Both the position numbers and the translations under genes were made by a program. Below, piece after piece: positions 16,527-49,782 of a DNA stretch of 64,000 bases. Under the pieces are notes generated by a model that searched no databases, was not told where the DNA came from, and worked only from the letters and a program-made list of their open reading frames with translations. This stretch comes from Macrostomum lignano (lineage: Eukaryota), in assembly GCA_002269645.1 (NCBI GenBank), contig NIVC01001591.1, positions 62,001 through 126,000 on the forward strand, written 5' to 3'. Position 1 is the stretch's first letter. Each line of letters starts with the position of its first letter.

Positions 16527-19500
16527 TCACAACCCGGTGCTGCACACTGAGAATGTCCCAGACGATATCGACGAAGAACTGGAGGCTTGCCGATACTGCT
16601 GATGCTGTTGTTGAGCGCTAAAGTTCAACAGTGGCGGCGGAGGCGGCAACGGCTGGACGAATAAACCGATTTTATCCAAAACTGGAGCTCCATCAGCGGC
16701 AGGATTAGCGTCAGTCTGTTCATCCTCCGACTCGTCAACAGCTGACAATGTCGGATCAAAATCGGCAAATTCGTCGGCAACAGTTTGACATCGACGCTGT
16801 CGTTGCTCGGTTGACGAGTCGCTGGAGTCTTCTTGCCATTTCTCTAACGACCTCCGACGTGCGTTCATGAAGTAATTGCAGACTGTGGAGAGTTCCAGAC
16901 CCAGCTGCTCAGCTATGATCGATTGCATCTCTTTACTAGGCCTGCTAGTTTCGTTGAATATCGCGTTGAGTGTCCGGCGCTGGATGTCCGTGAACACCAG
17001 CCGGGGCTTCTTGGCCGGGGTGCCGTTCGGTTCAGACGGCTTTCTAGTTGACGATTGTGGAGCTGGCGCTGAAGACTGCGACTGCGGCTGGAGCACGGAT
17101 CTGGTAGGTGGCAGCTTTGGCTGCTGCTGCTGCTGGGCCTGAGACAGAGGGCCGTTGCAGTCACCAGAGTCAGCAGTGTCGAAGCTGCGTTTCAAAGCTG
17201 CAATAATCAGTTAGACAGTTGTACATATATTACACTATACAATGTTAACATCATATTAGATAAAACGCATGAGACAAGAGAAAGAATGAAGAAAGATTAG
17301 AGACAGAAAGCTAAAGAGATTAGAGGGTTCTAGAGAGAGATTAGAGATAGCGAGAGAAAGATAAGAGATAGCAAGACAGAGATTAGAGATAGCAAGACAG
17401 AGATTAGAGATAGCGAGAGAAAGATAAGAGATAGCAAGACAGAGATTAGAGATAGCAAGACAGAGATTAGAGATAGCAAGAGAGAAACTAAAGATAGCGA
17501 GAGAGAGAGAGAGAGAGAGATTAGAGACAGTGAGAGGGAGAGATTAGAGAAAGCGAGAGGGAGTTTAGAGACAGTAGGAAAGAAGTTTGAGATAGCGGGA
17601 AAGAGATTAGAAATAGCGATTCTTAAATTGGATTAGATGGCGATTCTGAGAATGGATCAGGGGCGATTCTGAGAATGGATCAGGGGCGATTCTAAGAATT
17701 GGTCAGGGGCGATTCTGAGAATGGATCAGGGCGATTCTGAGAATGGATCAGGGGCGATTCTGAGAATGGATCAGGGCGATTTTTGGAATGGATCAGGGGC
17801 GATTCTAAGAATGGGTCAGGGGCGATTCTGAGAATGGATCAGGGGTGATTCTGAGAGTGAATCAGGGGTGATTCTAATAGTGGATCAGGGGGGGGGGGCA
17901 ATTCTTGCCTCTCTCAGGGCAAGAGACCACTTCAAAACTTACAGGCCGAGTGCAGCGAAGACATTCTATCCTCTACGGGAGTTTGCAGCCATTTCCACAT
18001 GCGTCGGAAAGTTTCTCGACCAGATTTTAATTTGCTCCACGGCTTGGGATTGCGCAACAGATCGGACAGGGTGCCCTGGCTCCGGCAGAGCACCTGCTGA
18101 GCGAACACCGCCTGAGGAATGCCGCACTTTTTCAACTCGAAGATGACTCGCTGGGCCACCTCTTTCGTATTGATTTCGAATAACGGATCCGAAGCTGTCG
18201 GTAAATCTGCACTGCCGCTATCGGAATTGGCGTCCTTCTTGCTGTTGTAGTCTTGCAGTGTTGAGACCAGAATTTCGGCCGCATTGTCTTGGACTGTCAC
18301 TGCAGCGGCTTTTGACGTTTGGCTTTTTGACTTTGCCGATGTCGGTTTGGGCTTTGCTGGACTGAGCGACACTGCTGCTTGGACTGGGGTGTCGACAAGC
18401 TGGCTACCGAGCCTGGCGTGCGAGATTTTTGGTAGGTTTATGGTATACTATTGTATGTTTATGGTATACTATTGTATGTTTATGTATGTTGTATGTTTAT
18501 GATTATATATTATCTGTATGTTTATGGAAGATTATCTGTACATTTATGGTAGATTATCTGTATGTTTATGGTAGATTATCTGTATGTTTATGGTAGATTA
18601 TCTGTATGTTTATGGTAGATTATCTGTATGTTTATGGTAGATTATCCGTATGTTTATGGTAGATTATCTGTATGTTTATGGTAGATTATCTGTATGTTTA
18701 TGGTATATTATCTGTATGTTTATTGTAGATTATACTGTATGTTTATGGCATATTATCTGTATGTTTATGGAAGATTATCTGTACATTTATGGTAGATTAT
18801 CTGCATGTTTATGGTAGATTATCTGTATGTTTATGGTAGATTATCTGTATGTTTATGGTAGATTCTCTGCATGCTTATGGCCGATTATCTGTATGGTTGT
18901 GGTAGATTCTTTGTATGCCATAGATTATTGATATGTTTATGGTATATTCAATGTTGGGCACCATTAATGAAAATCTTAACTTTTATCAATAGCAAAAGCA
19001 TTAACATTAAAGCAAAAAAATCTTAACTTATTAACTCTTAATTTTGTTAAGTTAACTGAAAGTTAACTGATTATCATTAATAAGCATTAATCCATTAAAA
19101 TTAACACAAAATACAGAAATCTTGCACTAATTTCCAAAGCAGACTTTATAATGCACTGTCTTTGCTTTTCCACCTTTTTAGTAAAACACAAAGGTCATCT
19201 AAGCAATTTATGAGCTAAAAAGTAATAAATAATACTTTTAAAAACTTGTATATATGATACTACTAAAAGTAAGCATACGATAAATAATAACTCAGCTATT
19301 TGAAACTTGAAAGCTAATTAGTTAATCATAAAATATGGATAGGAAGGTTGTTTTAGTAGCATTAACAGGCGCAGCAAAAAGTTACAAAAGATTAGGGAAG
19401 AAGTGAATCAAAGCGATCAATGCTCACATGCAACAATAAAGTCAAATTTTAATTTATTATTAAAGTTCATTAGTAAGAAGTTGTTACATTTGCATGATCA

Positions 19501-21705: not shown

Positions 21706-22679
21706 GTCATTACATTGGCTTTGTATACAAAATTAAACACAGAGGAGTGACTGCAAATTAAAAAAAACAAGAAAGCAATAAAGTCACGGTGCTGTGCTGT
21801 TCGCGTCTTAGAAAACTTCTTCAGAATTAATGGTTATTAATGAATAACAATTCTAATTAGTAAACGCATTTCGCGGAAAAGACACTTCATATGGTCTGAA
21901 AAAAGTAGTATTTCAAACAAAGTTAAACAGTACCCAAAAATTAAAATTTTATTGCAATAAAACTTACTATGTAGGGTGATTTTAGTTCTAAAGCTTACAT
22001 ATATTTTTATAGATTTTATGTTAAACGGATCGGTTAATTTTGAATGCTTTTAATCGTCAATATACTAAATCTAATCAATGTTCTATTATCGATGCAAAAC
22101 CAGTGGCGGCGCAGGGGGGGGGCAGCTGCCCCCGGGTGACCACAGGTCACTGCCTCAAGGTGGGTGACCACCCCACCATCCCCACGGCCCTCGAAAAGAC
22201 CCTAGGAAGGGCCAGGGCAGATGGTCACCCCTTGCTATGCAACTAGCACCAATGATTAAAAAAGCATTTTTATAAGATTTCTCGTTTTGTAAATTCATTT
22301 TGTAGGAAGTGTGTCATAATTTGTTCGTAATTTTTCACTGTCTTAGAAAATGCATGTGTTCTAATTCAAATGTTTTAATTTATTTGTTTAATTACGATTG
22401 GGAAGGGGCGGGTTGACCACCTAGTGGATTAAACTGATGTCTTGATGTAAAGAAAAGTTTTTATGTTTAATTTAAACTCATTTTCAAGTGTTTGCAATTT
22501 CTTAGCGACTTGGTTAGTCTACGACTCCGGCGATTTTTTGTCTTATTTTAACCATCAATACATCTTTAGTAAATCTGCATGTTATACATGTGATCAAATT
22601 CCACTGAATCTTCCAACTAAACCGATTATTTCTTAGGGGTAGTTACTTAAGCGCGTTTTTGACGGTTAATTCTCTGGTA

Positions 22680-23399: not shown

Positions 23400-24533
23400 C
23401 AGGAACGGAAACTTCTGGAGAACAGCGTGGCATACGTCTGAGTTTCGACAGTCCAGTTATAAGTAGACCTACTTATACTGTGGATACCAATTGATACTAC
23501 TGAATTGGTGATCTGCTGCGAGCTGGTGTACTCGCTGGCGAGATCGGACCTGCTGTACTCGGACGCGACTCTGACGGCAGTCGACGCTTGAGCCAGACGT
23601 TTGAAAGATCGGGTCGCGTACGCGGACGGCGATTAATGAGACCACTGACGGGGGCTTGCATTTATATGCTGGCGCAATGGAACGACTCTGCATTATTAAA
23701 GTTAAATTAAATGGCGATGGAAATAGGCAGCTTTTCCCAAATATACACAGTTATAAAGAAACAGTAATGTACATACACACTCAATCGTCTAGCTCTAACA
23801 GACAGCGACGGTTCGCCGACAATCATTGCCAGATTGTACGACTGTTCACTAGTAATGTCAGCTGCGTCGATAGAATTGTCATTCGTAGCATAGTCGTCAT
23901 CCGGAATCAACTGGCTTTCGTTGATCGGCTGCTCGTAGAGCGGAGACAAGGTGAATGGTGTATCATCTGATGCGCCGGCTCGCGCGGCGATGGCTTCGTC
24001 GTGCAGTTGCGTCCACGAAATGCCTACTGCGCTGGAAACTCTTACCTGATTGTCTTCGCAATCCTGTGTGCCAACGGTAATATACAACTGACTTGGCGTT
24101 GCAGATGTCGCTAGTGCGATGGACGATCGTCCAACGGCGTCATTAACTGTGTCGTTCGAAGCAGTGACACCCTCTGGAAACAAGTGGCTGACAAGATTAC
24201 CGACACTCGTAGTCTGTAACGACTACTCCCTTGACTTGTTCGAGGATTTATTAGCCCTCGACAAGATTACCGACACTCGTAGTCTGTAACGACTACTCTC
24301 TTGACTTGATCTGCTCTCGGCTGGTGCAACTGCAAACGCCTTAGACAAACCAATGGAGCATGCACCGAAAAAATCGGATTAGCGTCTATCTTAATAGGAA
24401 AGCTGCTTTGCATACTGGGCCAGTTAGAGCTATTTGGAACCATGCCACAGTCTCCGTCTAGACACCCAGCTGTGCCAAACAATATGGTTGGCTGACTCAT
24501 GCTTCTAAGCGTCAAATATGACGATAGAATCAT
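23400..24533 (-). pseudogene. Possible degraded or orphan coding region (Ser/Thr/Asp-rich reading frames broken by stops and a ~50-bp internal duplication)
   Basis: GC-richer than its flanks. ORF 24183-23707 (158 aa), ORF 24533-24267 and a further ATG-less frame (SPSAYATRS...RSFRSC) preceded by an in-frame TAA. Direct duplication at ~24190-24238 and ~24260-24308. No family recognised. Confidence 0.3.
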
Positions 24534-29500: not shown

Positions 29501-32500
29501 AGACCAGGCTCGTTCAACTAGCTGCAGCTGGGCCTCGGTTAGGTCGGGAAATTCTTCCTCTTCTTCATCAGCTGGCGGCGGCGGAGTCGGCGGCGGCTCC
29601 TCGTACTGATAGGGCAAGACTGGCAGCTCGCGTTCGGCTAGTTTGAGATTGCGAGTCACCCTGGCAACCAGGTCGCGCTCGTCCGCTTCTCGCTGCATGG
29701 TTTGATTGACGATTAGGGATTAGTGAATATCTACGTTAATCCTATGGGATTAGGATTGGATTAGGGAATAATTACATTAATCCAATGGGATTAGGATAAG
29801 GATTAAAGAATATCCACGCTAATCCAATGGGATAAGGATTGGATTAGAGAATATCTATGCTAATCCTTTCGGATTAGGATTGGATTAAAGAATATCCACG
29901 CTAATCCAATGGGATTAGGATTGGATTAGAGAATATCTATGCTAATCCTTTCGGATTAGGATTGGATTAAAGAATATCCACGCTAATCCAATGGGATTAG
30001 GATTGGATTAGAGAATATCTATGCTAATCCTTTCGGATTGGGATTGGATTAGGGGATATCGATGCTAATCCTTTCAGATTAGGATTGGATTAGAGAATAT
30101 CTATGCTAATCCTTTCGGATTAGGATTGGATTAGGGAGTATCGATGCTAATCCTTTCGGACTAGGATTGGATTAGGGAGTATCGATGCTAATCCTTTCGG
30201 ATTAGGATTGGATTAGGGAATATCTATGCTAATCCTAGGGGATTAGGATTGGATTAGAATATCTACGCTAATCCAATGGGATTAGGATAAGGATTAAAGA
30301 ATATCTACGTTTTTCCAATGGGATTGGATTAGAGATAATATACACGCTAATCCAGTGGGATTAGGATTGGATTAGAGAATATCTACACTAAACATATGTG
30401 ATTAGGATTGGATTAGATAATATTTATGTTAATCCATTCGGATTAAAATTAGATTAGAGAACTACACGATCTTTGAGTTTTACATACTGTAATACTACAG
30501 TGGTCGTTGTGCCAATAACAAGACTATAGTAGGAATAAATTGTAAATGCGCTCGTAATAAAACTCATAATAACTCACTCTTTTAGCCCAATACTGCATCT
30601 TTAAATTCTCTTCGGTCTCGACGCGTTGCATGTAGGATTTTAACGACTGAGACGAGGTCTTGCTGCAGAAGAATCAAGGGTAGCCAATATTTAATAGCAA
30701 AAAAGTACACGATGCAATTCTCAGAAACCTTTTAATTCTCTCTAAATAACAGGCTTACATATCGTTTAACCAATCAGGCGATAAATATTTGCACGGCGAG
30801 ATGATATCGGCCACTGACTTCGGCTCCTCGATTGAAGTGATGACGCAATCTTCGTCATCGTCGGCTGAGGGGCGTTTAGAGGAGGGGTGATTCTCAGGTG
30901 AGATTGAGTTCGATTCTTAGGTGAGACTGAGGGACGATTCTCAGGTGAGATTGAGTGACGATTCTCAAGTGAGATTGAGGGACGACTCTGAGGTTAGATT
31001 GAGGAACTATTCTCAGGTCTGATTGAGAGGCGATTCTCAGGTGAGATTAAGGGGCGATTCTCAGGTGAGATTGAGAGGCGATTCTCAGGTGAGATTGGGG
31101 GCGACTCTCAGGTGAGACTGAGGGTCGATTCTCAAGTGAGATTGGGGGCGACTCTCAGGTGAGATTGAGAGGCGATTCTCAAGTGAGATTGAGGGGCAAT
31201 TCTTAGGTGAGATTGGGGGCGACTCTCAGGTGAGACTGAGGGTCGATTCTCAAGTGAGATTGGGGGCGACTCTCAGGTAAGACTGAGGGTCGATTCTCAA
31301 GTGAGATTGGGGGCGACTCTCAGGTGAGACTGAGGGTCGATTCTCAAGTGAGATTGGGGGCGACTCTCAGGTAAGACTGAGGGTCGATTCTCAAGTGAGA
31401 TTGGGGGCGACTCTCAGGTAAGACTGAGGGTCGATTCTCAAGTGAGATTGGGGGCGACTCTCAGGTGAGAATGAGAGGCGATTCTCAAGTGAGATTGAGG
31501 GGCAATTCTCAGGTGAGACTGATAGGAAATTCTCAGGTGATTTTGACACAGGAGGGTTGCACTATACCAGAGTCGGCAGCAGCTGATTTCGGCAAAGTCG
31601 ATGCAGCAGCAGCTGGATGCTTTTTCTTGTTGCTTTTGTCAGATCGAGCACCCGAAGAAGCCATACCGGTAGCTACAGTTGCTAACGGAGTAGAGTGAAT
31701 GCACGGCTGCTTCTGGGACTGCTGCTGCTGTTGCGAAGTTGCCTGGGCGACGATTGAAGCAGTTGACGCAGGCGGCTGAGACTTGTCAGTAGTAGAGGCC
31801 TGATTGGCTCCGGCTGGCGAGGGAGACTGATGAGAGTTGGAAGTGGGGGTGTAACGATTGATAGATTTTATCATCAACAGATTAAAAGTAACAGACTTCT
31901 TTAAAGAAATTTGGTAAACAAGAATCTTCAAGAGAAGGATTAGCGAAAATTAAGGGGCGAATATAATTTAGCTAAGGATTAGGGGCGATTCTTATCAAGA
32001 TTGGGATTATGGCGATTGTTATTTAGCTGAGGATTAGGGGCGATTCTTATCAAGATTGGGATTAGGGCGATTGTTATTTAGCTGAGGATTAGGGGCGATT
32101 CTTATCAAGATTGGGATTAGGGCGATTCTTATCAAGATTGGGATTAGGGCAATTGTTATTTAGCTGAGGATTAGGGGCGATTCTTATCAAGATTGGGATT
32201 AGGGCAATTGTTATTTAGCTGAGGATTAGGGACGATTCTTATCAAGATTGGGATTAGGGCAATTGTTATTTAGCTGAGGATTAGGGGCGATTCTTATCAA
32301 GATTGGGATTAGGGCAATTGTTATTTAGCTGAGGATTAGGGGCGATTCTTATCAAGATTGGGATTAGGGCAATTGTTATTTAGCTGAGGATTAGGGGCGA
32401 TTCTTATCAAGATTGGGATTAGGGCAATTGTTATTTAGCTGAGGATTAGGGACGATTCTTATCAAGATTGGGATTAGGGCAATTGTTATTTAGCTGAGGA

Positions 32501-35500
32501 TTAGGGGCGATTCTTATCAAGATTGGGATTAGGGCAATTGTTATTTAGCTGAGGATTAGGGGCGATTCTTATCAAGATTGGGATTAGGGCGATTGTTATT
32601 TAGCTGAGGATTAGGGACGATTCTTATCAAGATTGGGATTAGGGCGATTCTTATCAAGATTGGGATTAGGGCAATTGTTATTTAGCTGAGGATTAGGGGC
32701 GATTCTTATCAAGATTGGGATTAGGGCGATTGTTATTTAGCTGAGGATTAGGGACGATTCTTATCAAGATTGGGATTAGGGCAATTGTTATTTAGCTGAG
32801 GATTAGGGGCGATTCTTATCAAGATTGGGATTAGGGCGATTGTTATTTAGCTGAGGATTAGGGACGATTCTTATCAAGATTGGGATTAGGGCGATTGTTA
32901 TTTAGCCGGGAATTAGGAGCAATTATTATCAAGATGGAGATTGAGAGCGATTCTTATTAAAGTGGGGATTAGGGGCGATTCTTATTAATGTGGGAATTAG
33001 GGGCGATTCTTATCAAGATGAGGATTAGGGGCGAGTCTTATCGAGGTTGGGATAAAGAGACAATATAATAGGATTAGATTTCGAAGATTTCAGGAACAGT
33101 ACAGTTACAATCTAAAATTGACAGCCTAAAATATCGCTTAAATGATAGTAATACTACTCACATTCGCTGCAGACAAGTAGGAGTCTGGCAAATTAGTTAT
33201 CTGCCCTAGTACAGATTGTACAGCGTTCAGGGCAGAATGAGAATTCTGCTGACTTCTTCTTTGGCGCTGACGATTGCCACTAGAAGCAGAAGACGCTGAA
33301 CAAGCAGCAATCGATAAATGCTGATGCCGGTTGAAGCTCTGGCCTTGGCGAAGCTGACTGTATATAGAAGAGGTATACACAAAAACAAATAGTGTTCTAA
33401 GCTGGTGTTTGGTAAAAACTATATTTGAGCACATAAAAATATACAATCACATCAAATTACCTTGGTAAAGATTGCCGACTAATTAATGATGTGTTGCCAG
33501 TGCCAGCAAATATTTCCAAAGTGTTCTTGGAGAAATTGAAATCAGCCTGCTCAATATCCTGAAAATCGACCAGATATTATGTTTAAAACAAAACATAAAA
33601 TATTTACATTGAATTGTTTTTTTTTTAAATGCTCACCAAATTCCAAGTGCCTCGATTTTCGGTGGACAGGCGATTTCTTTTGCTATATAAAAAGTAAAAT
33701 TAAAAGGTAATTATATAATCTATTGTTTTTTTCAACCTTACATCAATTATTGCTCTACTATAGTTATGTCTATGGCTATAGATATATATTATACCTATAA
33801 CAAAAAATTGTGAAAAGCACTTACAATAAAATGCTATCTAATGTAGGTTAATGAAAAAGTAAAAAAATCTGTTTGGTAATCCTCAATATATAATATATTG
33901 ACCATTTATTAATTTATCAATCTGAAAAGATATAGACCATTTATTAATATAAAATAATTGATATACTGTTATAGCAATACATTATGGCACCAGCATACTT
34001 TAGTAACTAGTATTGTCTTAACAAAACCATTATTAGCCTAAAATATTTTATACTTATATGTGAATGAAATAATGAAATATTTTTGTGATAATTGATATAT
34101 TTAGCTATGCTTTAATGGTATTGTCTACAATGTGGGATGTCAAAAGCCATACATAATTTAGACTAGTTAAAGTAAAGGTATCAATCATATAAGGAGTACT
34201 TTAGAAAATTGAAGTTTTACACAAATGGAAAAGCACTATGTAAAGTAAATAGAAGCTATAAGAAATTAGGAATATATTTTGGTCTTTATAGAAGAAAAGT
34301 TAATAATTTGTAGATGGCATCTAAAGCATATGGTTAGCAATGGTTAGCATTGTGTAATATGAGTATGCTTTTGCATTTTGAATTCATTCTATAATACTTA
34401 CTAACCTAGCAAACTTAAATGTACAGCAAAACAAGGTTTACATAATGCTAAGACATAATAAATGATTTATACTCAAATCTAAAGTGCATATCTATTTGAA
34501 TCAAGGGATAATAGCTACTACATGCCAAATTGAATGTGCATTTATAGAAAGCAAAAAGTTATTTTAGGTATATGCACACAATCAGGTTAAATAGACCAAT
34601 GTACAAGTTAGTCAGTCAACCCTAACCCCCCACATAGCTTGGGCTAGGTAGGCAATTCCCACCCTTAATCTCTAGGATTAATGGTGTACAGATGCGGTGT
34701 GATAAGCAGATAGATACCAGGGCACCTAAATGGCAGCTTCTAAGATATGCTTAGGCCTATATTTGCTTGCCATATGAAAGTTTTAAATATTTATTTTGAA
34801 ATCAAAATTCTCAAATGAAAAAAAAGGCAATGGTCTTTTTTTACTCTTTTTTTGCCTCATTAAACTTACTTCAATCTTATAAAAATATGGCTGTAATTAA
34901 AAATTTTAGCATCTCTTACTCACTAGGCCTAATTAGACCTATGTTATAGACTATAGGGTCTTTTAAGCAATTTTTTGTGCAAACAATGTTATATTTCTAA
35001 TTATAGGCCTAATTTAAATGCAATATTGACAATGCAAAATATTATAAAATAATATTTATAACTTTTTAATTTTATATTATAATAAATAAAACAAGAAATA
35101 AAAGCCACAATATTAAAATCAACAAAAAATGATAATAATAGGTATAGTTTTATATCTAGAACATTTTTTTATTTTTGCATTGAATGCAAGACAAAAATGA
35201 ATAAGACAGGCTATAACCTTATTGCAGCCAATGGCTTTATTAAAATCCTGGCTATAAAAAGGGTCTATATAAAACAAAATTGAAAAAAGAAACAATTAAA
35301 AGCAAATAAGCCTATATTTAGCTAGAATTTAACTTGAAACTTCTTTAAATATTACAAACAACTTGCCTAGAGTGTTACAAAATTGTCTTCTTATCTTTAC
35401 TTAGGTTTATGTCTGACTAGGCTAGGCCTAGACTAGATGCAATATGTAATAATGATTCATGACAAGAAAACAATATTTTTAAAAGCCAATTACAATTTAA

Positions 35501-37174: not shown

Positions 37175-40100
37175 ATGGCGAAGTACTCAGACTTTGTTGG
37201 CTCCAATGTCAAGCAGAATGGGGTCGATGATATGGTGCTTATACCTCGAATTAATGAGGCCGCCATCACTGACAACTTAAAGATTCGATTTCTGAACAAT
37301 GCTATTTATGTGAGCTCATAATTTCTTCTGTTTTTGTCATTTGAAAATTATCATGAGTAAGATTTCAACTGAAAGCACCTAATTTAGACTCAGCAACATC
37401 TTGGTACTGATGACTCATATTTAATATGTTATACCATAATTTTAATTTCCACAGACCTACATTGGACCTGTGCTGATTGCAGTTAACCCATTCAAAGATG
37501 TGAAAATCTTTGACGATAAATTCATCGACATGTACCAGGGCTCTGTGAGTTGCTTTTTGATACACAAAATGCATTAGAACTGCCATCATAAACTTTTTAA
37601 TAATTTCTAAATAAAACTTTAGGCCCTGTTCGAGAATCCGCCGCATATTTTTGCAATCGCCGATCACATGTACAGAAGCATGGTGTCCGAAATGGAGAAC
37701 CAGTGCGTTATTATCAGGTAAGAGTTGCTGGTGGCAGCTCAAGGGGTCGTCATGAGATTCAAAATTCCCATCCCATGACAGCCAACCCCCAGTGCACAGA
37801 GACTGTACATGCTTGACGATTAGAAAGTCAGGGCCTCATTTTCCTCTCGGTGCGACCTTTGACTCTGTGAAATTCGCAAATTTGCAATATGCTTAATTTA
37901 CTAATAGTAGCTAAATCGCTTTTTCAAATATAAAAAAGTGGCGAAAGCGGCGCAGGAAAGACCGTCAGCGCCAAGTTGATCATGAACTACGTCTCAAAAG
38001 TATCCGGCGGCTCGGGCCGTGTCGAAGAAGTTAAAGAAGTCATTTTGGAGTCCAATCCGCTGTTGGAAGCTTTTGGCAACGCGAAAACTGTGCGGAATAA
38101 CAATTCAAGTCGATTTGTGAGTTCTCAATGGCGCATGGAAGTTCGAATTTTTATATACAAAAATTCAATATCGAAAAATGAAACAAGGAATATTGACTGC
38201 ATTGCATGAAATCCTTGCTTTAACTCTCTCACCTCTCTCCCTCTCCCTCTCTCCCTCTCTCCCTCTCTCTTCCTCTCCTCTCTCTCCCCTCTCTCCCTCT
38301 CTTTTTCTCTGTCTCCATCTCACTCCCTCTCCCTGTCTCCCCCTCTACCTCTCCTCTCTCTCCCTTTCATTGTCTCTCTCCCTCTCTCTCCCTCTCTCCC
38401 TCTCTCTCCCTCTCTCCCTCTCCCTCTCTTTCTCTCTGTCTCCATCTCACTCCCTCTCCCTGTCTCCCCCTCTACCTCTCCCTCTCTCTCCCTTTCATTG
38501 TCTCTCTCCCTCTCTCTCCCTCTCTCCCTCTCTCCCTCTCTCTCCCTCTCTCCCTCTCCCTCTCTTTCTCTCTGTCTCCATCTCACTCCCTCTCCCTGTC
38601 TCCCCCTCTACCTCTCTCTCCCTCTCCCTCTCTCTCTCCATCTCTCTCCCTCTCTCTCTCCTTTTCACCCTCTCTTCAACTGCTGCTTCCGCATAGCCTA
38701 GCGGGTTGCAGCCCAGTGGTTTGAGCATCGGAACTCACAACTAAAAAGTCGGGGGTTCGATTCTCGACCTACTTTGGAACAATTTGAGTCCTTGAGAAAG
38801 ACGCTTACATGTAACTTTGCATTGCTTCAGTTCACCCAGCTGTAAAATGGGTGCCAGCATTAGCTGGGGTAATTGAGGCTGTGTGTGGCGACCCCCCAGT
38901 CCTTGGACTGAACAGCCGTACGCAGCCTTCAGATGCGCCGCGCAATAGCTGTGGCTGAGCTGTCGGTTGCACATCTGGAATCCGTGATATGATACAACTA
39001 AAATACAAAAAACATCAAAACGGCCCATTTCAGGGCAAGTACGTTGAAATTCAGTTTAGCCGAGGCGGCGAACCAGTCGGAGGAAAAATCTCTCAATTCT
39101 TATTGGAAAAATCGCGTGTTGTGCTGCAAAACTCGGGCGAACGAAATTTTCACATCTTTTATCAGCTTTGCCGCGGCACCAGACCGGAAATGAAAGGTTT
39201 GAAAATATTTGTTTAAATTCATGAATTTTTTCTACATGGTTTTTTCACATGATTGGTTGCTCGCCTTCAATGCAGCCGCATTTAATCTGGCCGGACCCGA
39301 GTGCTTCTCCTACCTGAACCAGAGCGGCTCATTTGACGCTGACGGCATTGACGATGTGAAGGAATTTGGCGAAACTCTGGTGAGACATTCTCTTTCCGAA
39401 ATTGCTTTTTTTGTCGCTGTCAAATCTTTGTATTCAGGCTCGTGACAGCTGGCTGCAGTCTCAGTCCGCATATTGAGCTGCTTTTTTCGCGATCTCAACC
39501 CTCTGATCTCTGATCTCACTCTCTCAGATCTCTGATCTCACCCACTCAGATCTCTGATCTCATCCACTCAGATCTCTGATCTCACCCACTCAGATCTCAG
39601 ATCTCTCCCTCTCAGATCTCTGATCTCACCCACTCAGATCTCAGATCTCTCCCTCTCAGATCTCAGATCTCACCCACTCAGATCTCAGATCTCTCCCTCT
39701 CAGATCTCTGATCTCACCCACTCAGATCTCAGATCTCACACTCTCAGATCTCAGATCTCAGATCTCTCCCTCTCAGATCTCATCCCCTCAGATCTCTGAT
39801 CTTACCCTCTTAGATCTGTGATCTCACCTTCTCAGATCTCTGATCTCACCCTCTTAGATCTCAGATCTCACTCTCTCCGATCTTGATCTCACCCTCTCAG
39901 ATCTCAGACCGCACCCTCTCAGATCTCTAATATCACCCTCCTAGACTTTTGATCTCACCCTCTCAGATTTATTGTCTCTTCCTCTTGGATCTCTGATCCT
40001 ACCCTCTTAGATCTCCGATCTCACCCTCTTAGATCTCCGATCTCACCCTCTTAGATCTCGGATCTCACCCTCTCAGATCTCGGATCTCACCTCTTAGATC

Positions 40101-43100
40101 TTCGATCTCACCCTCTTAGATCTCCGATCTCACCCTCTCAGATCTCGGATCTCACCTCTTAGATCTCCGATCTCACCCTCTTAGATCTACGATCTCACCC
40201 TCTCAGATCTCTGACCCCACACTCTCAGATCTCATCCTCTCACATCTCAGATCTCATCCTCTTATATCTCTGATCTCGCCCTTTCATATCTCTGATCTCA
40301 CCCTCTATCTTACTCTCATATCTCAGATCTCACCTTCTCACATCTCAGATCTCTTCCTCTCAAATTTGATACCCCGTCTGATTTCTCTTCTTCTTTCATT
40401 ATTTTTCCGCCAATTTTCTGATCAAATTTACATATCATGGCGCAGTGAAACGCTATTTCCTATACTATCTGCAGTTTGTTTAGAATGGTTTTACATTTAA
40501 ATTCTTGTAAATTATACCTAATACGCAAGAACCATGCAAACACGGCAGATATGTTGGATTCCGACAATTTTTACAATTTCGCTCACTTACGGCAAGCGCT
40601 TGTATTGCGCACAATTCATCAGCCATAATATAAACGAATCCAGTTGTCTCGCCCTCTTCTCACCTCTCCCTGTGTACAGTTCACAGGCTAAATTTGGACA
40701 AACTTTTTATTGAGCCATTTTATTTATCTTGTTTAGTTTATCATCTGCATAGCTGTCCACTCCGCTAACCCCCCCCCACTCCGTAACCCCCTCATCTGCA
40801 TTTTCCATCTGTGTTCTTAGAGAAAGACGGAGAAAGATCAGCGTAGCCAGTCGTTTTATAGAGAAGCAGACAGGGACTTCCCTAGACGCTAGCGACCAAA
40901 TCAGCCTTTGACGAACCAAAGTTGGGAAACTCGAAAGTGAAGGATCCGCATTTTGTTTTGGACACAAAAATAAGGAGCGCCAATTATAGGGCGCCAAAAT
41001 AAGGAGCGTCAACTATAGGGCGCCAAAATAAGAAGCGCTAAAATAAAGAGCGCCAACTATAGGGCGCCAAAATAAGGGGCGCCAACTATAGGGCGCCAAA
41101 TAAGGAGCGCTAAAATAAAGAGCGCCAACTATAGGGCGCCAAAATAAGGGGCGCCAACTATAGGGCGCCAAATAAGGAGCGTCAACTATAAGGCGCCAAA
41201 ATAAGAAGCGCCAACTATAGGGCGCCAAATAAGGAGCGTCAACTATAAGGCGCCAAAATAAGAAGCGCCAAAATAAGAAGCGCCAACTATAGGGCGCCAA
41301 ATAAGGAGCGTCAACTATAAGGCGCCAAAATAAGAAGCGCCAAATAAGGAGCGTCAACTATAAGGCGCCAAAATAAGAAGCGCCAAATAAGGAGCGTCAA
41401 CTATAAGGCGCCAAAATAAGAAGCGCCAAATAAGGAGCGTCAACTATAAGGCGCCAAAATAAGAAGCGCCAAAATAAGGAGTGCCAACTATAGGGCGCCA
41501 AAACAAGGAACGTTAACTATAGGGCGCCAAAATAAGAAGCGCCAACAAGGGCGTAACTATGTAATTATATGGTAAACTTTCAACAAGAATTTAAAGAATT
41601 GGTTCTAGTGCTTCTAGTCCAGATTTTCAAAGATCCTTGACCGTATTAGGTGTGGGTTATAATTATCTGAGACAGTACAGGGTGCAGTGAACATTAATTG
41701 CATTTATAAACTGCTGGATGGAACTTCATTCAATATAGAGATGTTTTACTGGTTTAAGTAATAGAATTTTCGGCGTTTATAGTGTCTAAAAATAGTGAAT
41801 CATTTTTCTATAATAATTACCAGTTATTTTTTTCCACACAAAAATAGAGCCAGCTACTATGTAGCTCATAATACAATAATAGAAGCTGATATGCACGCAC
41901 CAGTTTGTACATTCTCACTACTCTACTTGCTAAGTAGAAATATAAACAAATAGCTGCCTTTATTGTATTAAATTTAGAAAAAAAGAACAGGACAAATTCA
42001 ACAACAAGTTTCGTTTTAACGGGGTTATGAATTTTGCTTGAACTTTTTTTTAATTCAGCACGCAATGGAAGTGATGGGCATGGATGAGTCAGTTCAAGAG
42101 GACATCATCAGCGTGCTTAGCGGAATTTTGCACCTGGGCAATGTGCAGTTTCGCTCAGCCGCCGGCGACGATCAAGTCGACGTGGTGGACGTTCGCCAAC
42201 TGGAGAGCCCGGCTGCGTTTCTGCAGATCGACTGCGAGACTCTGCGGCTGAAGCTCACCAGCCGGCTGATGGAGAGCAAGTGGGGTGGCAAGTCTGAGAA
42301 CATCAATGTTCCGCTCAACCAGGAGCAGGCCTGCTATACTAGGGATGCGCTGGCCAAGGGCCTGTACTCAAGGCTGTTCGACTTCATTGTTGAGGTAAGA
42401 ATCGGCCCTTGAATCGATCCTGAAGAATCGCCCATGAACTTGGCCTGAAGAATCGCCCCTGAACTGGCCCTGAAGAATCGCTCCTGAACCAATACTGAAG
42501 AATCGCCCCTGAACCGATCCTGAAGAATCGCCCCTGAACTGGCCCTGGAGAATCGCCCCCTGAACCGATCCTGAAGAATCGCCCCTGAACCGATCCTAAA
42601 GAATTGCCCCTGAACCGATCCTGAAGAATCGCCCCTGAACCGATCCTGAAGAATCGCCCCTGAACCGATCCTGAAGAATCGCCCCCTAAATAGATCCTGA
42701 AGAATCGCCCCCTGAATTGATCCTGAAGAATCGTCCCTGAACCGATCCTGAAGAATCGCCCCCTGAATAGATCCTGAAGAATCGCCCTTGAATCGATCCT
42801 GAAGAATCGCCCCCTGAACCGATCCTGAAGAATCGCCCCTGAACCAATCCTGAAGAATCGACCCTCCCTGAACTGGCCCTGAAGAATCGCCCCTTGAACT
42901 GGCCCTGAAGAATCTCCCCTGAACCAATCCTGAAGAATCGACCCTCCCTGAACTGGCCCTGAAGAATCGCCCCTTGAACTGGCCCTGAAGAATCTCCCGT
43001 GAACTTGGCCCTGAAGAATCGCCCCTGAACTGGCCCTGAAGAATCGCTCCTAAACTGGCGCTGAAGAATCTCCCCTGAACTGATCCTGAAGAGTCGCCCC

Positions 43101-46100
43101 TGTACCGATCCTGAAAAATCGCCCCTGAACTTGGCCTGAAGAATCGCCTGAAGGATTGACTTTGGTAACCCAAAAAATCGCCTCCAACAGTCCGTCAACA
43201 AGGCGATGGTGACCCAAGGCAGCGAGGTCAACGTTGGCATCCTGGACATCTACGGCTTCGAAGTGTTCAGACAGAACGGATTCGAACAGTTCTGCATCAA
43301 CTACGTGAACGAGAAGCTGCAGCAGATCTTCATCGAGCTGACGCTCAAAGCTGAGCAAGAGGAGTACCGCCAGGAGGGCATTCAGTGGTCGGAGATCCAA
43401 TACTTCAACAACAAGGAGATCTGCGAGATGATTGAGTCGAAAAACCCACCAGGAATATTTTGTGTACTTGACGACGTCTGCGCTACAGTGCACGCGGTGA
43501 CTGAAGGCATCGACAGCAAATTCTGCCAGAAATTGGCTGGCACCTTCAGCTCCTACAGGTGACTTTGGAGGCCTTCGTTGAGTGCTAACTACTCGCTAGG
43601 AGCTGTGACAGACAGGCAGACGCTGAGACAGATTCAGGCAGACACTGTTACATTAGCACATTCAAAGTTATGCTTCACATACTTAAGCGTTGTAAAAATA
43701 TTGTTGCTAGAATTATAATTAAGACTCAAATGCCACCAGAATTGGGTTTCAAATCGGCGCCAAAATTTGGTTTCAAATAGGCGCCAAAATTGGGTTTTAA
43801 ATCGGCGCCAAAATTGAGTTTTAAATCGGCGCCAAAATTGAGTTTCAAATCGGCGCCAAAATTGGATTTCAAATCGGCGCCGAAAGGGAATTTTAAATCA
43901 ACGCGAAAATTGGGTTTTAAATCGGCGCCAAAATTGAGTTTTAAATCGGCGCCAAAATTGAGTTTCAAATCGGCGCCAAAATTGGATTTCAAATCGGCGC
44001 CGAAAAGGAATTTTAAATCAGCGCGAAAATTGGGTTTTAAATTGGCGCCAAAAGTTAAAATTCAATTCGAAGCTTGAAGTAAAAATGTTTAAGCAACAGA
44101 GTTAGTAAAGAATGAATCTGAATTCTCATTTCAGGTATTTCAGCTACGCCACAGACCAGTTCACCATCAGCCACTACGCCGGCTCCGTGCAGTACTCTCC
44201 GTCGGGTTTCTGCGAGAAAAATCGCGACGCTCTGAACAACGACTTGCTGCTGCTGATGCAGAGCAGCTCAAACGCTTTCATTCGAGCTCTGTTCCCGGAG
44301 AAAGTTCAGGACAGGTCAAGGCCAACCACGGCTGGTACGAAGATTCGTAGTCAGGCCAATCGGCTGGTGAAAACTCTGATGAGCTGCACTCCGCATTACA
44401 TCCGGTGCATCAAGCCTAACGAGACTAAGAAGCCGGGCGATTTTGATATGGAACGGGTGAAGCACCAGGTGATGTACCTGGGACTCAAAGAGAACATCAA
44501 CGTACGTCGGGCCGGTTTCGCCTATCGGAGGCCGTTCGATAAATTTCTGAAACGGTGAGCGCTTTTTTTCAAAGGATTTTTTACAATCGTTGGGGGTTCT
44601 TTTCTTTGACATTTTTACAATTCTTTTACAAAAGAGGGTTGTAGTCTAGTGGTTAGAGCATCGGACTCACGACTGGAAGGTCAGGGATTCAATTCTCGAC
44701 CCACTCGAAACAATTTAATTAGCTGTAAAATGGGTGCCAGCATTAGCTGGGGTAATTGAGGGTGCGTGTGGCGACCCCCCACCCCCAGTCCTTGGACTGA
44801 ACAGCCGTACGCAGCCTTCAGATGCGCCTTGCAATAGCTGCGGCTGAGTATTGGAATGTACAGTTTACCTGCCCCTGCCTCTCTTCCCCCTTTTCGCTCT
44901 GTACTGTACACCCGCTTTATCGATCGCCCCAACCCCCTTTTTTGACTCATCAATGCTAGGCCAACCCCTTTCCCCCATGCCTTATCTATAAATATCTCTG
45001 ATTAACTTGGTTGCTGATTTCTCAAATAGCCATTCATTAGCGGTTTGTGATCACGATAATTGGTCCAAGGGGTTGTGAGTCCAAGCGATTCACAGATCAA
45101 GGCACAGACAGTACATGCCTGAAGATTAGAAAGACAGGGCCCTTGTACACCCTGTGAGAGAGTGCATATGAGTGCATGTTAGGAGCCAGGGAAATGGGTA
45201 GAATAGCCTTACATGTACAAGCGCCAGTTGTGGCACGATATCGCCGAGAAGTCGTTGCCCAAATCCCACAAGACTGTAATCTGATGAAACCGATATGTAT
45301 CGTAATTAACTTTACAAAGAACTGACCGAAAACTTTTAGCTACGCCATCCTCACCAAAGAGACTTGGCCTCAATGGCGCGGCGATCCCAAGGAAGGCATC
45401 AACCATCTGATGGCTCACGTGGCGATGGACAGGGCGCAGTGGCAGCTGGGCAAGACTAAACTCTTCATCAAGAGTCCAGAATCTGTAAGTGAAAATAATC
45501 CTGCTCCTATTCTTAACTTAATCCAATCCAGAATAAAAAACATTTGAATTTTAAACACCGGAATTTCAAGTATCAAAATTTGAAATCCAAAAAACTCGAA
45601 ATCCTATGATTCGAAACCCCAAAATTCGAATTCTTAAAACTTGAGATCTAAAATTTAAATCCCGAAATTTAAATCCCGAAATTCGAAATCCCAAAATTCG
45701 AAGTCCTGAAATTCGAAATCCCGAAATTCGAAATCCCAATATCCGAAGCCACCAATTTTGAGATCCCATGATTTCAAATCCTATTAAGTCGAAATCCCGA
45801 AATGGCCGACTCAATCCGCCAGCTCTTCATGCTCGAAGACGAGCGCCAGCGCCGGTTCGACCACTACGCCCGGGTCATCCAGAAAGCCTTCAGGTCGCAC
45901 AATTCCGATCGAGCGGTCAGCAATCTGCGGAGTCGAGCTCGCGACCTCTACCACGGCAAGAAAGAGCGGCGCTGGTGCAGCCTCTACAGGCAGTACGTCG
46001 GCGACTACATCGGGCTCGATGAGCACCCGGGACCCACCGCCTGCCTTCGCCGGGAGAAACTGCTGCGCAAGAAGGACAAAGTGTTATTCGCTGAGACTGT

Positions 46101-49100
46101 GGTGAAATATGACAGGCGCTTCCGGCCGGTGAACAGGGATCTGCTGCTGGCCGCGGACCGACTCAGCATCATCGGGCGCGAGCTGGTCAAGAAGGGACCG
46201 CAGAAGGGACAGATTCTTGAGGTGTGGGATTTGTCTGTTTGTCTGCTGGTCCTCAGGGCCACCAGCCTCCCAGATCCTCAGTTGCTGGGCCACCAGCCTC
46301 CCAGATCCTCAGTTGCTGGGCCACCAGCCTCCCAGATCCTCAGTTGCTGGGCCACCAACCTCCCAGATCCTCAGTTGCTGGGCCACCAGCCTCCCAGATC
46401 CTCAGTTGCTGGGCCACCAACCTCCCAGATCCTCAGTTGCTAGGCCACCAGCCTCCCAGATCCTCAGTTGCTAGGCCACCAGCCTCCCAGATCCTCAGTT
46501 GCTGGCCACCAGCCTCCCAGATCCTCAGTTGCTAGGCCACCAGCCTCCCAGATCCTCAGTTGCTGGGCCACCAGCCTCCCAGATCCTCAGTTGCTGGGCC
46601 ACCAGCCTCCCAGATCCTCAGTTGCTGGGCCACCAGCCTCCCAGATCCTCAGTTGCTGGGCCACCAACCTCCCAGATCCTCAGTTGCTGGGCCACCAGCC
46701 TCCCAGATCCTCAGTTGCTGGGCCACCAACCTCCCAGATCCTCAGTTGCTAGGCCACCAGCCTCCCAGATCCTCAGTTGCTAGGCCACCAGCCTCCCAGA
46801 TCCTCAGTTGCTGGGCCACCAGCCTCCCAGATCCTCAGTTGCTAGGCCACCAGCCTCCCAGATCCTCAGTTGCTGGGCCACCAGCCTCCCAGATCCTCAG
46901 TTGCTGGGCCACCAGCCTCCCAGATCCTCAGTTGCTGGGCCACCAGCCTCCCAGATCCTCAGTTGCTGGGCCACCAACCTCCCAGATCCTCAGTTGCTGG
47001 GCCACCAGCCTCCCAGATCCTCAGTTGCTGGGCCACCAACCTCCCAGATCCTCAGTTGCTAGGCCACCAGCCTCCCAGATCCTCAGTTGCTAGGCCACCA
47101 GCCTCCCAGATCCTCAGTTGCTGGGCCACCAGCCTCCCAGATCCTCAGTTGCTAGGCCACCAGCCTCCCAGATCCTCAGTTGCTGGGCCACCAGCCTCCC
47201 AGATCCTCAGTTGCTGGGCCACCAGCCTCCCAGATCCTCAGTTGCTGGGCCACCAGCCTCCCAGATCCTCAGTTGCTGGGCCACCAACCTCCCAGATCCT
47301 CAGTTGCTGGGCCACCAGCCTCCCAGATCCTCAGTTGCTGGGCCACCAACCTCCCAGATCCTCAGTTGCTAGGCCACTGCCTCCCAGATCCTCAGTTGCT
47401 GGGCCACCAGCCTCCCAGATCCTCAGTTGCAGGGCCACCAACTTCCCAGATCCTCAGTTGCAGGGCCACCAACCTCCCAGATCCTCAATTGCTGGGCCAA
47501 CCTCCCAGATCCTCAGTTGCTGGGCCAGTCTCCCAGATCCTCAGTTGCTGCTCCAGCAGCCTTCCAGATGCTGTTTCTGGGCCAGCCTTCCAGATCCTCA
47601 GTTGCTGGGCCACCAGCCTCCCAGATCCTCAGTTGCTGGGCCATCAGCCTTCCAGATGCTGTTGCTGGGTAAGTCGAATCAAAAGATTCTAAAACGTCAA
47701 CTCGCAGGTCATCAAACGCTCGGTGGCCGTCTCGGACATCCTATCGCTGCACCTGTCTCCCTATCAAGACGGCTTCCTTGTGGTGAAATGTCGCGATGGA
47801 GACGATTCTCTGCTCGAAGTGGCGTGCAAAACCGAGTTGCTCCTGCTGCTACTCGAACGGAACCCGGATTTGAAAATCGACTTCAGCACCAGCGTGGAGT
47901 TCTCGCTGCCGAAACGGGGCCTGCTAGGCAGGACCACCCGGCGGGTGAACTTCGTGTGCGACAGGGCTCGAGTCCGCCAGCCTGACTCGGTGCACGATCG
48001 GCGAGTTGCCACGGACGACTCGGCTCGGGTCGTGCTCAAGTCTTCGGGAATCGGTGAGGTTTTTTTCCTGTACTGTTTGAATTATTTCCAAGAATCGCCT
48101 TTAAGCAGTTAGAGAATCAATCGTTCTTGAGCAGTTCCAAGAATCGCCCCTGAGCAGTTCTGCAAAGAATCGCCCCTGAGCAGTTCTGCAAAGAATCGCC
48201 CCTGAGCAGTTCTGCAAAGAATCGCCCCTGAGCAGTTCTGCAAAGAATCGCCCCTTAGCAGTTCTGCAAAGAATCGCCCCTGAGCAGTTCTGCAAAGAAT
48301 CGCCCCTGAGCAGTTCTGCAAAGAATCGCCCCTGAGCAGTTCCAAGAATCGCCCTGAGTAGTTCTGCAAAGAATCGCCCCTGAGCAGTCCGAAGAATCGC
48401 CCTGAGCAGTCCGAAGAATCGCCCTGAGCAGTCCGAAGAATCGCCCTAAGCAGTTCAAAGAATCGCCCCTGAGCAGTTCTAAAAATCGCCCCGTGAGCAG
48501 TTCTGCAAAGAATCGCCCCTGAGCAGTTCAAAGATCCAATTCTAATTAGTCTACTATCAGTAGAAAGACGATTTTTTTACAAAAATCCTGCAGGCGGCAG
48601 GGGCGGCCTCACTGTCACGGTTGGCTCCGGCCTGTCCAACACAACGGACGCGTCGGGTCCCCGGTCCAAGCAGGCTGGTGGCGGCGGGCAACGCGCCGTC
48701 CGTCAGCAGCCGCAGGTCATCGATTCGCGCCTCCCGCCAGCCGGCCAGCTGCCCACGGCCAGGCGCCGGTCGCGAGACAACAACAGCGGCACCAGCGAGC
48801 GGCAGCAGCAGATCGCGCAACGCCGGCAAAGTTCTGCAACCACCGCAGCCAGCGGCAAGCTGCCGAAACCGACGCCCGCCCAGCGACAGCAGCGACAACA
48901 GCCGAATCCGAATCCGAATCCGAATCCGCCGCCAATTCTCACTGACAGCGTCATCTATCAGGCTGTGCAAAAGCCGGGCCCGCCGAGGCCGCCAGTGCCG
49001 CGTCAGAAGCCGCCGCCTCCGCCGCCGACCGCAGTGCCGCGCTGTGTCGCTCTGTGGGCATACGACGCGCAGGACACCAACGAGCTCAGCTTTAACGTTG

Positions 49101-49782
49101 ATGATGTTATTGAAATTGTTAAAAAGGTTGGAATCTTTGTTTTTTTAATGCCTAATATTGATTGCTTGTGGCATTTATTACGACCGAATCGCCCCTGAAC
49201 AGCTGAGAGAATCGCCCCGAACAGCTGAGAGAATCGCCCCTCATGAACAGCTGAGAGAATCGCCCCTGAACAGCTGAGAGAATCGCCCCTGAACAGCTGA
49301 GAGAATCGCCCCTGAACAGCTGAGAGAATCGCCCCTGAACAGCTGAGAGAATCGCCTCTGAACAGCTGAGAGAATTGCCCTTCATGAACAGCTGAGAGAA
49401 TCGCCCCTGAACAGCTGAGAGAATCACCCTTCATGAACAGCTGAGAGAATCGCCCCTGAACAGCTGAGAGAATTGCTTTTCATGAACAGCTGAGAGAATC
49501 GCCCCTGAACAGCTGAGAGAATCACCCTTCATGAACAGCTGAGAGAATCGCCCCTGAACAGCTGAGAGAATCACCCTTCATGAACAGCTGAGAGAATCGC
49601 CCCTGAACAGCTGAGAGAATTGCCCTTCATGAACAGCTGAGAGAATCGCCCCTGAACAGCTGAGAGAATCGCCCTGAACAGCATCAATAAATATTTTCCT
49701 TTCCGCAGACTCGGCCTGGTGGCACTGCCGACTCAACGGACGCGAAGGTCTCCTACCATCGAATTACGTTCGGGAACTTTGA
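37175..49782 (+). CDS. MYO1E: Long-tailed class I myosin (motor, IQ, TH1, Pro/Gln-rich TH2, SH3), MYO1E/F-like, 14 exons, ~1128 aa
   Basis: Exons 37175-37309, 37455-37544, 37623-37717, 37939-38116, 39034-39196, 39276-39379, 42059-42394, 43191-43558, 44135-44554, 45340-45484, 45823-46221, 47708-48053, 48594-49126 and 49709-49782. Motifs: [56 protein letters not shown]3 [15 protein letters not shown]...[18 protein letters not shown]. The last junction is off by 1 nt (see findings). Confidence 0.95.
37781..37835 (+). repeat. Short dispersed repeat family, copy 1 (GCACAG..GTACATGCTT.ACGAT.AGAAAGTCAGGGCC)
   Basis: Same motif at ~45099-45170 and ~57758-57860. Confidence 0.6.
38215..38690. repeat. 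CT homopyrimidine tract with internal duplication, Myo1 intron 4
   Basis: (CT)n variants. Confidence 0.95.
38703..38960 (+). mobile_element. tRNA-derived SINE, copy 1 (tRNA-like head plus CORE-like central segment)
   Basis: Head GGGTTGCAGCCCAGTGGTTTGAGCATCGGAACTCACAACT...GGTTCGATTCTCGACC has A- and B-box-like motifs. Body has ...CAGCTGTAAAATGGG. A near-identical body occurs at 44.7-44.85 kb. Lies in Myo1 intron 4. Confidence 0.75.
39490..40385 (+). repeat. ~20-bp minisatellite TCTCACCCTCTCAGATCTCAGA, Myo1 intron 6
   Basis: AGATCT-rich tandem units. Confidence 0.9.
40970..41555 (+). repeat. Minisatellite GGCGCCAAAATAAG(G/A)AGCG(C/T)CAACTATAG, Myo1 intron 6
   Basis: Tandem units with a GGCGCC core. 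Confidence 0.95.
42398..43155 (+). repeat. ~25-bp minisatellite GAATCGCCCCTGAACCGATCCTGAA filling Myo1 intron 7
   Basis: About 30 units starting at the donor (GTAAGAATCGG...). Confidence 0.95.
43730..44055 (+). repeat. 24-bp minisatellite AAATCGGCGCCAAAATTGRGTTT, Myo1 intron 8
   Basis: About 13 units with a ~120-bp higher-order duplication. Confidence 0.95.
44636..44850 (+). mobile_element. tRNA-derived SINE, copy 2 (internally deleted)
   Basis: GGGTTGTAGTCTAGTGGTTAGAGCATCGGACTCACGACTGGAAGGTCAGGGATTCAATTCTCGACCC, then AGCTGTAAAATGGGTGCCAGCATTAGCTGGGGTAATTGAGG...CAGTCCTTGGACTGAACAGCCGTACGCAGCCTTCAGATGCGCC shared with copy 1. Lacks ~55 bp present in copy 1. Confidence 0.75.
45099..45175 (+). 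repeat. Short dispersed repeat family, copy 2
   Basis: AAGGCACAGACAGTACATGCCTGAAGATTAGAAAGACAGGGCCCTTGTACACCCTGTG. Confidence 0.6.
45570..45805 (+). repeat. Degenerate AAATCCCGAAATTCG repeat, Myo1 intron 10
   Basis: Short tandem units running up to the acceptor. Confidence 0.8.
46250..47670 (+). repeat. 31-bp minisatellite CCAGCCTCCCAGATCCTCAGTTGCTGGGCCA, Myo1 intron 11
   Basis: About 45 units; 310-bp higher-order period (identical ORF starts at 46560/46870/47180). Confidence 0.97.
48085..48535 (+). repeat. 26-bp minisatellite GAATCGCCCCTGAGCAGTTCTGCAAA, Myo1 intron 12
   Basis: About 17 units. Confidence 0.95.
49185..49685 (+). repeat. 23-bp minisatellite GAATCGCCCCTGAACAGCTGAGA, Myo1 intron 13
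   Basis: About 21 units. Confidence 0.95.

Follow-up and report, generated by a model that had tools for sequence, protein, structure and literature searches.

The region examined here is a single window of 64,000 nt from the Macrostomum lignano genome, one haplotype of one locus, in which six introns of three genes contain tandem arrays built around a common 12-nt core, AGAATCGCCCCT. Pfam bears out the gene identities and strands given in the preliminary description of this DNA: a rhodopsin-type G-protein-coupled receptor (GPCR; 7tm_1) on the plus strand, ONECUT, with a CUT domain and a homeobox, on the minus strand, an SENP/Ulp1 protease (Peptidase_C48), also on the minus strand, and Myo1, a long-tailed class I myosin with Myosin head (motor), TH1 and SH3 domains, on the plus strand. 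An ankyrin gene and a TRPM gene, both on the plus strand, are the other genes considered. Tandem repeats make up 41% of the window, and about 37 arrays reach at least 150 bp, mostly with units of 20-35 bp; in the Mlig_3_7 assembly, simple and tandem repeats account for 15% genome-wide (PMC5730564).

The arrays were located with Tandem Repeats Finder, and the six sets of coordinates reported previously were reproduced within a few bases, the largest discrepancy being about 40 at one edge. All six arrays are intronic and consist of 12-30 head-to-tail copies, with periods of 23-28 bp or as dimers of 47-55 bp, and their host introns are bounded by GT..AG and measure 540-1335 nt. Between 74 and 94% of each host intron is tandem array, and the core-family array alone accounts for 37-94%, the wider range being due to a second, unrelated array in the ONECUT intron. 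This intron (17198..17942, minus strand, 745 nt, 81% tandem array) separates the CUT and homeodomain exons; with slashes marking splice junctions here and below, its donor is GGCCT/GTAAGT and its acceptor TTATTGCAG/CT, and the joined frame reads ...LHSA-S-LKRSFD. The core-family array in it (17616..17891) has 12 copies of a 23-bp unit, AGAATCGCCCCTGATCCATTCTC when read on the minus strand, with 6 exact cores, and is abutted by a 21-bp CT-rich array (17290-17619) which supplies more than half of the array sequence there. In the SENP gene, likewise on the minus strand, array SENP-a (31976..33053) contains about 20 copies of a 55-bp dimer, composed of AGAATCGCCCCTAATCCTCAGCTAAATA (28 bp) and ACAATTGCCCTAATCCCAATCTTGATA (27 bp), with 13 exact cores, and occupies an intron of 1335 nt (33161 to 31827, 81% array). 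Array SENP-b (30882..31540) has 24-bp units organised as a 47-bp dimer (AGAGTCGCCCCCAATCTCACTTG and AGAATCGACCCTCAGTCTCACCTG) with 1 exact core, and its intron (31567 to 30865) is 94% array, leaving 27 + 17 nt outside.

The three arrays of Myo1 are all read on the plus strand. Array Myo1a (42397..43148) has about 30 copies of the 25-bp unit AAGAATCGCCCCTGAACCGATCCTG, with a variant ending in ...GAACTGGCCCTG, and 10 exact cores; it fills 94% of the intron at 42395-43190, of which only 2 + 42 nt are not array. It begins at position +3 of the donor (GAG/GTAAGAATCGG), and its first unit overlaps donor positions +3 to +10. Array Myo1b (48128..48529) has 16 copies of the 26-bp unit AAGAATCGCCCCTGAGCAGTTCTGCA and 11 exact cores, in an intron of 540 nt (48054-48593, 74% array). 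Array Myo1c (49186..49682) has 21 copies, the 23-bp unit GAGAATCGCCCCTGAACAGCTGA alternating with a 26-bp variant to give a 49-bp dimer, and 11 exact cores; its intron (49127-49708, 582 nt, 85% array) lies inside the SH3-coding region. At two of the six introns, degenerate units provide the polypyrimidine tract and the AG of the real acceptor: this acceptor is AAATCGCCTCCAACAG/TC in Myo1a and AAACGCCCCTCAG/CC in SENP-b, in both cases within the last unit.

The position of the Myo1a intron (FDFIVE/SVNKAM) coincides with that of an intron in Myo1e of the fish Pogonophryne (FDYLVD/CINKAI), a comparison which covered this one intron of the six. Therefore, the Myo1a intron is ancient and the array grew inside it, and an introner-like, intron-creating origin of this intron is ruled out. 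The introns were there first, and the arrays expanded within them as far as the splice sites. The reading frames across the six introns are consistent, apart from 1 nt at the last Myo1 intron. There, the Myo1c junction, AAAAAG/GTTGGA ... CCGCAG/ACTCGG, is 1 nt out of frame, where the SH3 motif needs ...AAG G+AC TCG, and the discrepancy is likely to reflect either an error of homopolymer length in the assembly or a non-canonical splice.

Within the window there are 52 exact copies of AGAATCGCCCCT, compared with none in 100 dinucleotide-preserving shuffles, and they are confined to the six arrays; all plus-strand copies fall in 42.4-49.7 kb and all minus-strand copies in 17.6-33.0 kb, which places the core on the sense strand in the plus-strand Myo1 gene and in the minus-strand ONECUT and SENP genes. 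We refer to AGAATCGCCCCT(GA) as the extended box, and a core-like form is written GAATCGCCCC. The statement that every array carries the core holds literally, but SENP-b contributes a single exact copy, because each of its alternating subunits is one base off the core (AGAGTCGCCCCC and AGAATCGACCCT). Among the array consensuses, 12 pairs have words of at least 12 nt in common, against 0.15 expected. In the literature searched, the motif was met only in primers, and nothing was found on minisatellite or satellite families of Macrostomum or on the core motif. Metagenome loci with two cores 8-20 nt apart (n=61) were considered as possible relatives and rejected, since the multi-copy ones among them show 15-bp or 22-bp periods in unrelated contigs and do not belong to the family.

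The preliminary description regarded the remainders of the units as unrelated and proposed that a short seed had been amplified repeatedly and independently. The consensuses on which this was based are right, yet the remainders are significantly similar to each other. When the 12-mer was removed and the remainders were compared with composition-preserving shuffles, the summed score between genes was -14.5 (null mean -42.8, p<0.0005) and the score within genes was 15.5 (null -9.8, p<0.0005), so that the check for shared ancestry of the units proposed in that description comes out in favour of kinship within the window. A 14-mer, AGAATCGCCCCTGA, is common to the ONECUT array and the three Myo1 arrays, and Myo1a and Myo1c have 16 nt in common. 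The closest relatives are arrays of the same gene, that is Myo1a, Myo1b and Myo1c on the one hand and SENP-a and SENP-b on the other. Homology over the full length of the units, together with periods of 23-28 bp, identifies them as diverged descendants of one unit and contradicts independent amplification of a seed. As judged from unit similarity, the six arrays are thus diverged copies of one minisatellite of about 24 bp. Homogenisation has proceeded separately in each of them, as is evident from array-specific variants, the 47-55-bp dimers and the degenerate units at the edges.

Beyond these six arrays, the window has no convincing further member of the family. The 20/21-bp array CCCATCCGCCCCTACTGTCT(C), located by Tandem Repeats Finder at 10216..11730 on the plus strand downstream of the GPCR gene, had been described as carrying a similar core; TCCGCCCCT is indeed present there 55 times on the plus strand, but the similarity of the unit to the family does not exceed that of shuffles (p=0.27), and only the 7-mer CGCCCCT is common to both. 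Distant membership was considered for this array and for those beginning at 27799, 62594, 39491 and 2657, but after correction for 31 tests no candidate remains significant; the strongest was the array at 62594 (p=0.01 uncorrected).

The sense orientation of all six arrays had been presented as a regularity of six out of six. All six are indeed on the sense strand, but they are not six independent trials, because arrays of the same gene are closest relatives linked by local spread: the binomial probability is 0.03 for six arrays and 0.25 for three genes. Three genes cannot demonstrate amplification that is oriented by transcription, as had been proposed. A strand rule is nevertheless visible across the window. 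In 22 of the 30 genic arrays the sense strand contains more C than G (GC skew below 0, p=0.016), whereas genic sequence outside arrays has almost no skew. The donor-like motif GTRAG occurs in genic arrays once in sense and 128 times in antisense orientation (1 against 10 arrays). With a donor weight matrix of nine positions, in which a site was scored at 6 or more and an array counted at three sites or more, 1 array has such sites in sense and 8 in antisense (p=0.04). If the SENP-b array were inverted, it would create 25 strong donors, and inversion of Myo1c, ONECUT or SENP-a would create a few weak ones. Other families are also co-oriented with their host genes (the arrays at 46256 and 58305, and those at 17290 and 26802). 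As arrays of other families have the same G-poor, donor-free sense strand, the orientation requires no property of the core motif. Cryptic poly(A) signals were absent from the six core-family arrays, and across all genic arrays there are at most 4 copies in either orientation.

Taking these observations together, the explanation that we favour, with a probability of roughly 0.55, is that the six arrays are one dispersed minisatellite family, self-propagating and functionless, whose sense orientation results from survivorship and small numbers. Four elements of it are established by the data, namely that the arrays have a common origin, that they grew in place within old introns, that no transposon flanks accompany them and that a strand rule holds across the window. 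The introns of the M. lignano genome are largely built of arrays with 20-35-bp units, and within this setting an array would grow by replication slippage and unequal exchange, while new arrays would be seeded over short range into neighbouring introns, as suggested by the closest kinship being found within the same gene. The extended box AGAATCGCCCCT(GA) would then be the slowly diverging conserved box of the unit, and not a seed that is reused independently. Because arrays with cryptic donors inside an intron would damage splicing, a selective filter may have kept the intronic arrays of this window mainly in the orientation that yields RNA poor in G and lacking donor-like GU(A/G)AG. The C-rich core would fit this rule, and it would be compatible with polypyrimidine tracts. 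A sequence-specific function of the core is not needed for the observations, and a motif-specific, transcription-oriented function is unproven.

Several results weigh against this explanation or limit its reach. The block of 12-14 nt that is invariant between arrays is longer than uniform divergence predicts: for 12 consecutive positions out of about 24 to stay invariant, the probability is about 3e-4 with six independent lineages and about 0.02-0.05 with three. Some force therefore preserves the core box when arrays are founded or spread, for which slippage and survivorship do not account. The ONECUT units are nearer to the Myo1 units than to those of neighbouring SENP, despite the opposite strands, which means that an inversion has preserved the sense orientation at least once. 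When the core family is left out, the sense skew is below 0 in 16 of 24 arrays (p=0.15). Control 5-mers of the same composition as GTRAG are also skewed (577 against 1554 copies) and the depletion of GTRAG is not clearly greater, so that avoidance of donors is hard to tell from a sense strand that is poor in G overall. In Myo1a and Myo1b, neither orientation offers potential donors, and a general filter therefore accounts for only part of the orientation seen; of the six arrays, donor avoidance strongly explains SENP-b alone. The orientation that is left over after the general filter is either chance or motif-specific. Finally, gene strands and intron borders were deduced from the DNA sequence.

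The alternative that takes the conserved block at face value sees in the core a functional cis-element that is present in introns as multimers and whose sequence and strand are fixed by selection. At the RNA level such an element could be a C-patch (GCCCCU) that recruits a protein of the poly(C)-binding or hnRNP K type or another splicing regulator; at the DNA level, the arrays could be binding sites in series. Besides the 12-14 nt that stay invariant from array to array in an otherwise diverging unit, the sense orientation in all three genes and the position of the arrays against splice sites, where degenerate units form two real acceptors, would agree with such a function. Within arrays, however, the core is as variable as the remainder: the per-site mismatch rates are 4.26% for core positions and 4.29% for the other positions of the unit (Fisher p=1.0), in a test that was anchored on core-like matches and would, if biased at all, favour a conserved core. 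The core variants within arrays are mostly C-to-T, and the main subunits of SENP-b and the second subunit of SENP-a have mutated cores. There is therefore no sign of selection holding each copy of the core. Considering in addition that the orientation evidence comes from three genes (p=0.25), that the sense strand is likewise C-rich in many unrelated arrays of the same introns, and that the motif has no match in Rfam and appears in the searched literature only as primers, we find a functional core doubtful. It is likewise unlikely that the box AGAATCGCCCCT(GA) is a strand-specific element, acting either as an RNA C-patch site that aids the processing of repeat-bloated introns or as a recognition or priming site for transcription-coupled seeding beside donors. 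If it were, the family should be sense-oriented genome-wide well above other arrays, and the box should persist in an otherwise drifting unit.

Other explanations concern the way in which the arrays arose or were oriented. They could be the central repeats of a non-autonomous mobile element, of the Helitron/Helentron type or a miniature inverted-repeat transposable element (MITE), or could result from reinsertion of circular DNA, in which case insertion preference or selection after insertion would produce the orientation bias. The occurrence of one family in six introns of three genes, in both absolute orientations and within 32 kb, is what such spread would leave, several other array families recur in the window, and in oyster, Helentron-derived elements spread satellite-like arrays in a similar manner (PMC7492417). 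When 500-bp flanks were compared by BLAST with each other and with the array-masked window, only two chance matches of 20-25 nt were obtained, which excludes terminal inverted repeats as well as a common flank among the six arrays and speaks against the mobile-element footprint that had been among the suggested roles. Moreover, the introns of Myo1a and SENP-b leave at most 44 nt outside the array, with no room for element ends, and the sole 128-bp dispersed repeat of the window does not adjoin arrays of the family. A mobile origin is therefore improbable in our view. We consider it quite improbable that a process tied to transcription or splicing, such as tandem duplication of a splice-junction region of the amphioxus 'mirage' type or seeding next to donors guided by microhomology, generated the arrays in sense orientation from the outset. 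In this direction point the start of the Myo1a array at donor +3, the two acceptors that are degenerate units, and the amphioxus 'mirage' minisatellites, which duplicate exon-intron borders (PMC3087553). The sequence GAATC(G) is found at or near all three Myo1 donors (42395, GAG/GTAAGAATCGG; 48046-48054, GGGAATCG/GTGAGG; 49127-49140, AAG/GTTGGAATC), at most 12 nt from those of Myo1b and Myo1c, against a background of 1.23 GAATC per kb and strand; this pattern, noticed after the fact, may hint at microhomology-guided seeding. Yet exon sequence is absent from the units, GAATCG does not keep a fixed place relative to the GT from intron to intron, so that these junctions are non-homologous, the arrays of ONECUT and SENP-a begin 50-110 nt from their donors, and identity of 12-16 nt across genes is not explicable by the splice-site consensus. 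Highly improbable is an orientation that follows the direction of the replication fork, with an origin at the divergent SENP(-)/Myo1(+) promoter at about 36 kb and the C-rich strand being the same nascent strand on both sides. The C-rich strand of the arrays does flip at about 36 kb and, at the convergent gene ends, at about 15 kb, but a transcription model predicts the same flips, fork and transcription direction are inseparable within one window, and the near absence of skew outside arrays is unlike a mutational asymmetry of replication.

The dispersed minisatellite family thus remains the preferred explanation for the six arrays, and it is accompanied in the window by other recurrent repeats. 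The array at 46256-47669 in a Myo1 intron and that at 58305-58905 in a TRPM intron, both in plus-strand genes, have an identical 28-mer, CAGCCTCCCAGATCCTCAGTTGCTGGGC, in common on the same strand, and represent a second multi-gene minisatellite family co-oriented with transcription. A (T)CTAACA block recurs in the arrays at 92-173, 1715-1954, 6853-7022, 59290-60869 and 62594-63560; the array at 6853, in a GPCR intron, has it on the opposite strand from the others, which shows that the sense orientation of array families is not strict. Between genes, a pure-purine (GGAGA)n array of 1.44 kb (51025-52468) lies between Myo1 and the ankyrin gene, and (GGTTTA)n arrays (55601-55954) separate the ankyrin gene from the TRPM gene; the plus strand is G-rich in both cases, opposite to the trend within genes. 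Four arrays (12175-12618, 13252-13850, 40967-41553 and 43736-44053) have in common a block, TTTTGGCGCC or GGCGCCAAAAT, which contains the palindrome GGCGCC and is similar to the E2F-site palindrome, TTTGGCGCCAAA. Other than the tandem arrays, the only repeats in the window are a 128-bp dispersed repeat in two Myo1 introns (38838-38959 and 44721-44848, 91% identical, same strand), an 81-bp inverted pair (50611-50686 and 57664-57744, 88% identical) and a 52-bp tandem duplication (24190-24311).

Some further observations concern the host genes and the coding potential of their arrays. In the sense frames of the Myo1a, Myo1b and Myo1c arrays there are 60, 19 and 40 stop codons, against 3, 4 and 10 in the antisense frames, which are open for up to 250 aa. 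This asymmetry was not seen in the ONECUT and SENP arrays and is thus inconsistent across the six, and a protein-database search with the translated antisense array peptides returned no matches. The protein search with Myo1 gave a best identity of 65%. The last ONECUT exon, with the homeobox, is 99% identical to the M. lignano UniProt entry A0A1I8HP61. When the window was compared at 17935-18020, the ONECUT model of that entry was found to be without GRETFRRMWKWLQTPVEDRMSSLHSA at the end of the CUT exon, and the public model seems to be mis-spliced beside the array-filled intron. The entry differs from the window in a few residues, and it may be a homeolog or another allele of the ONECUT gene described here. 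On the window, ARAGORN found no tRNA-like genes, and Rfam gave zero matches at gathering score over its entire length, so that no known structured RNA family was recognised.

M. lignano is a model of regeneration and stem cells, and tandem repeats hinder the assembly and annotation of its genome. If its introns consist mostly of a limited set of locally spreading minisatellite families, this would help the construction of repeat libraries and gene models and the study of intron evolution, and the rule that the sense strand of the arrays lacks donor-like motifs would be of the same use. If, on the other hand, the orientation of the core family exceeds the general background genome-wide, the core becomes a candidate cis-element, in a species for which transgenesis already exists.

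Among known systems, the closest in general appearance are the human hypervariable minisatellites, which Jeffreys et al. in 1985 reportedly described as families with a common core of 10-15 bp. As in that system, many separate loci consist of short tandem units with differing remainders and a common short core, and the two strands are strongly unequal in G and C. The core sequence itself is unrelated, and in M. lignano it is the small introns of neighbouring genes that are filled, with units that can be aligned over their full length.

The euchromatic satellite families of Tribolium castaneum (Cast1-Cast9 and TCAST-like; PMC4675708, PMC3411249) offer a comparison for the mode of spread. There, short arrays are scattered through gene-rich DNA and occur in introns as well, concerted evolution acts within each array, and transposition accounts for only part of the spread; the monomers measure about 170 or 340 bp, compared with 23-28 bp in the arrays of M. 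lignano. The non-autonomous Helentrons Cg_HINE of oyster (PMC7492417) also form related clusters of tandem repeats, in many short arrays across the genome, but their arrays sit between the conserved left and right flanks of the element, whereas the M. lignano arrays have no common flanks.

A further parallel is with the 'mirage' minisatellites of amphioxus (Adh3 and globin genes; PMC3087553), which are intronic, lie against splice sites and leave normal splicing in amphioxus undisturbed; the Myo1a array overlaps its donor region in a similar way. In the fish Pogonophryne albipinna, a tblastn search of the Myo1e locus met an array at 4128-5533, in the intron upstream of the exon at 5548-5754, made of about 20 tandem 71-bp copies which hold the first 57 nt of that exon, and this appears to be an exon-boundary minisatellite of the 'mirage' type in an Antarctic fish. 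The amphioxus units duplicate the exon-intron boundary, including the exon, whereas the M. lignano units hold no flanking exon sequence and recur in unrelated introns, and assignment of the six arrays to the 'mirage' class was rejected on that ground. Considered against these systems, the arrays described here form a dispersed minisatellite family of an ordinary kind, which has a conserved box and is new for M. lignano.

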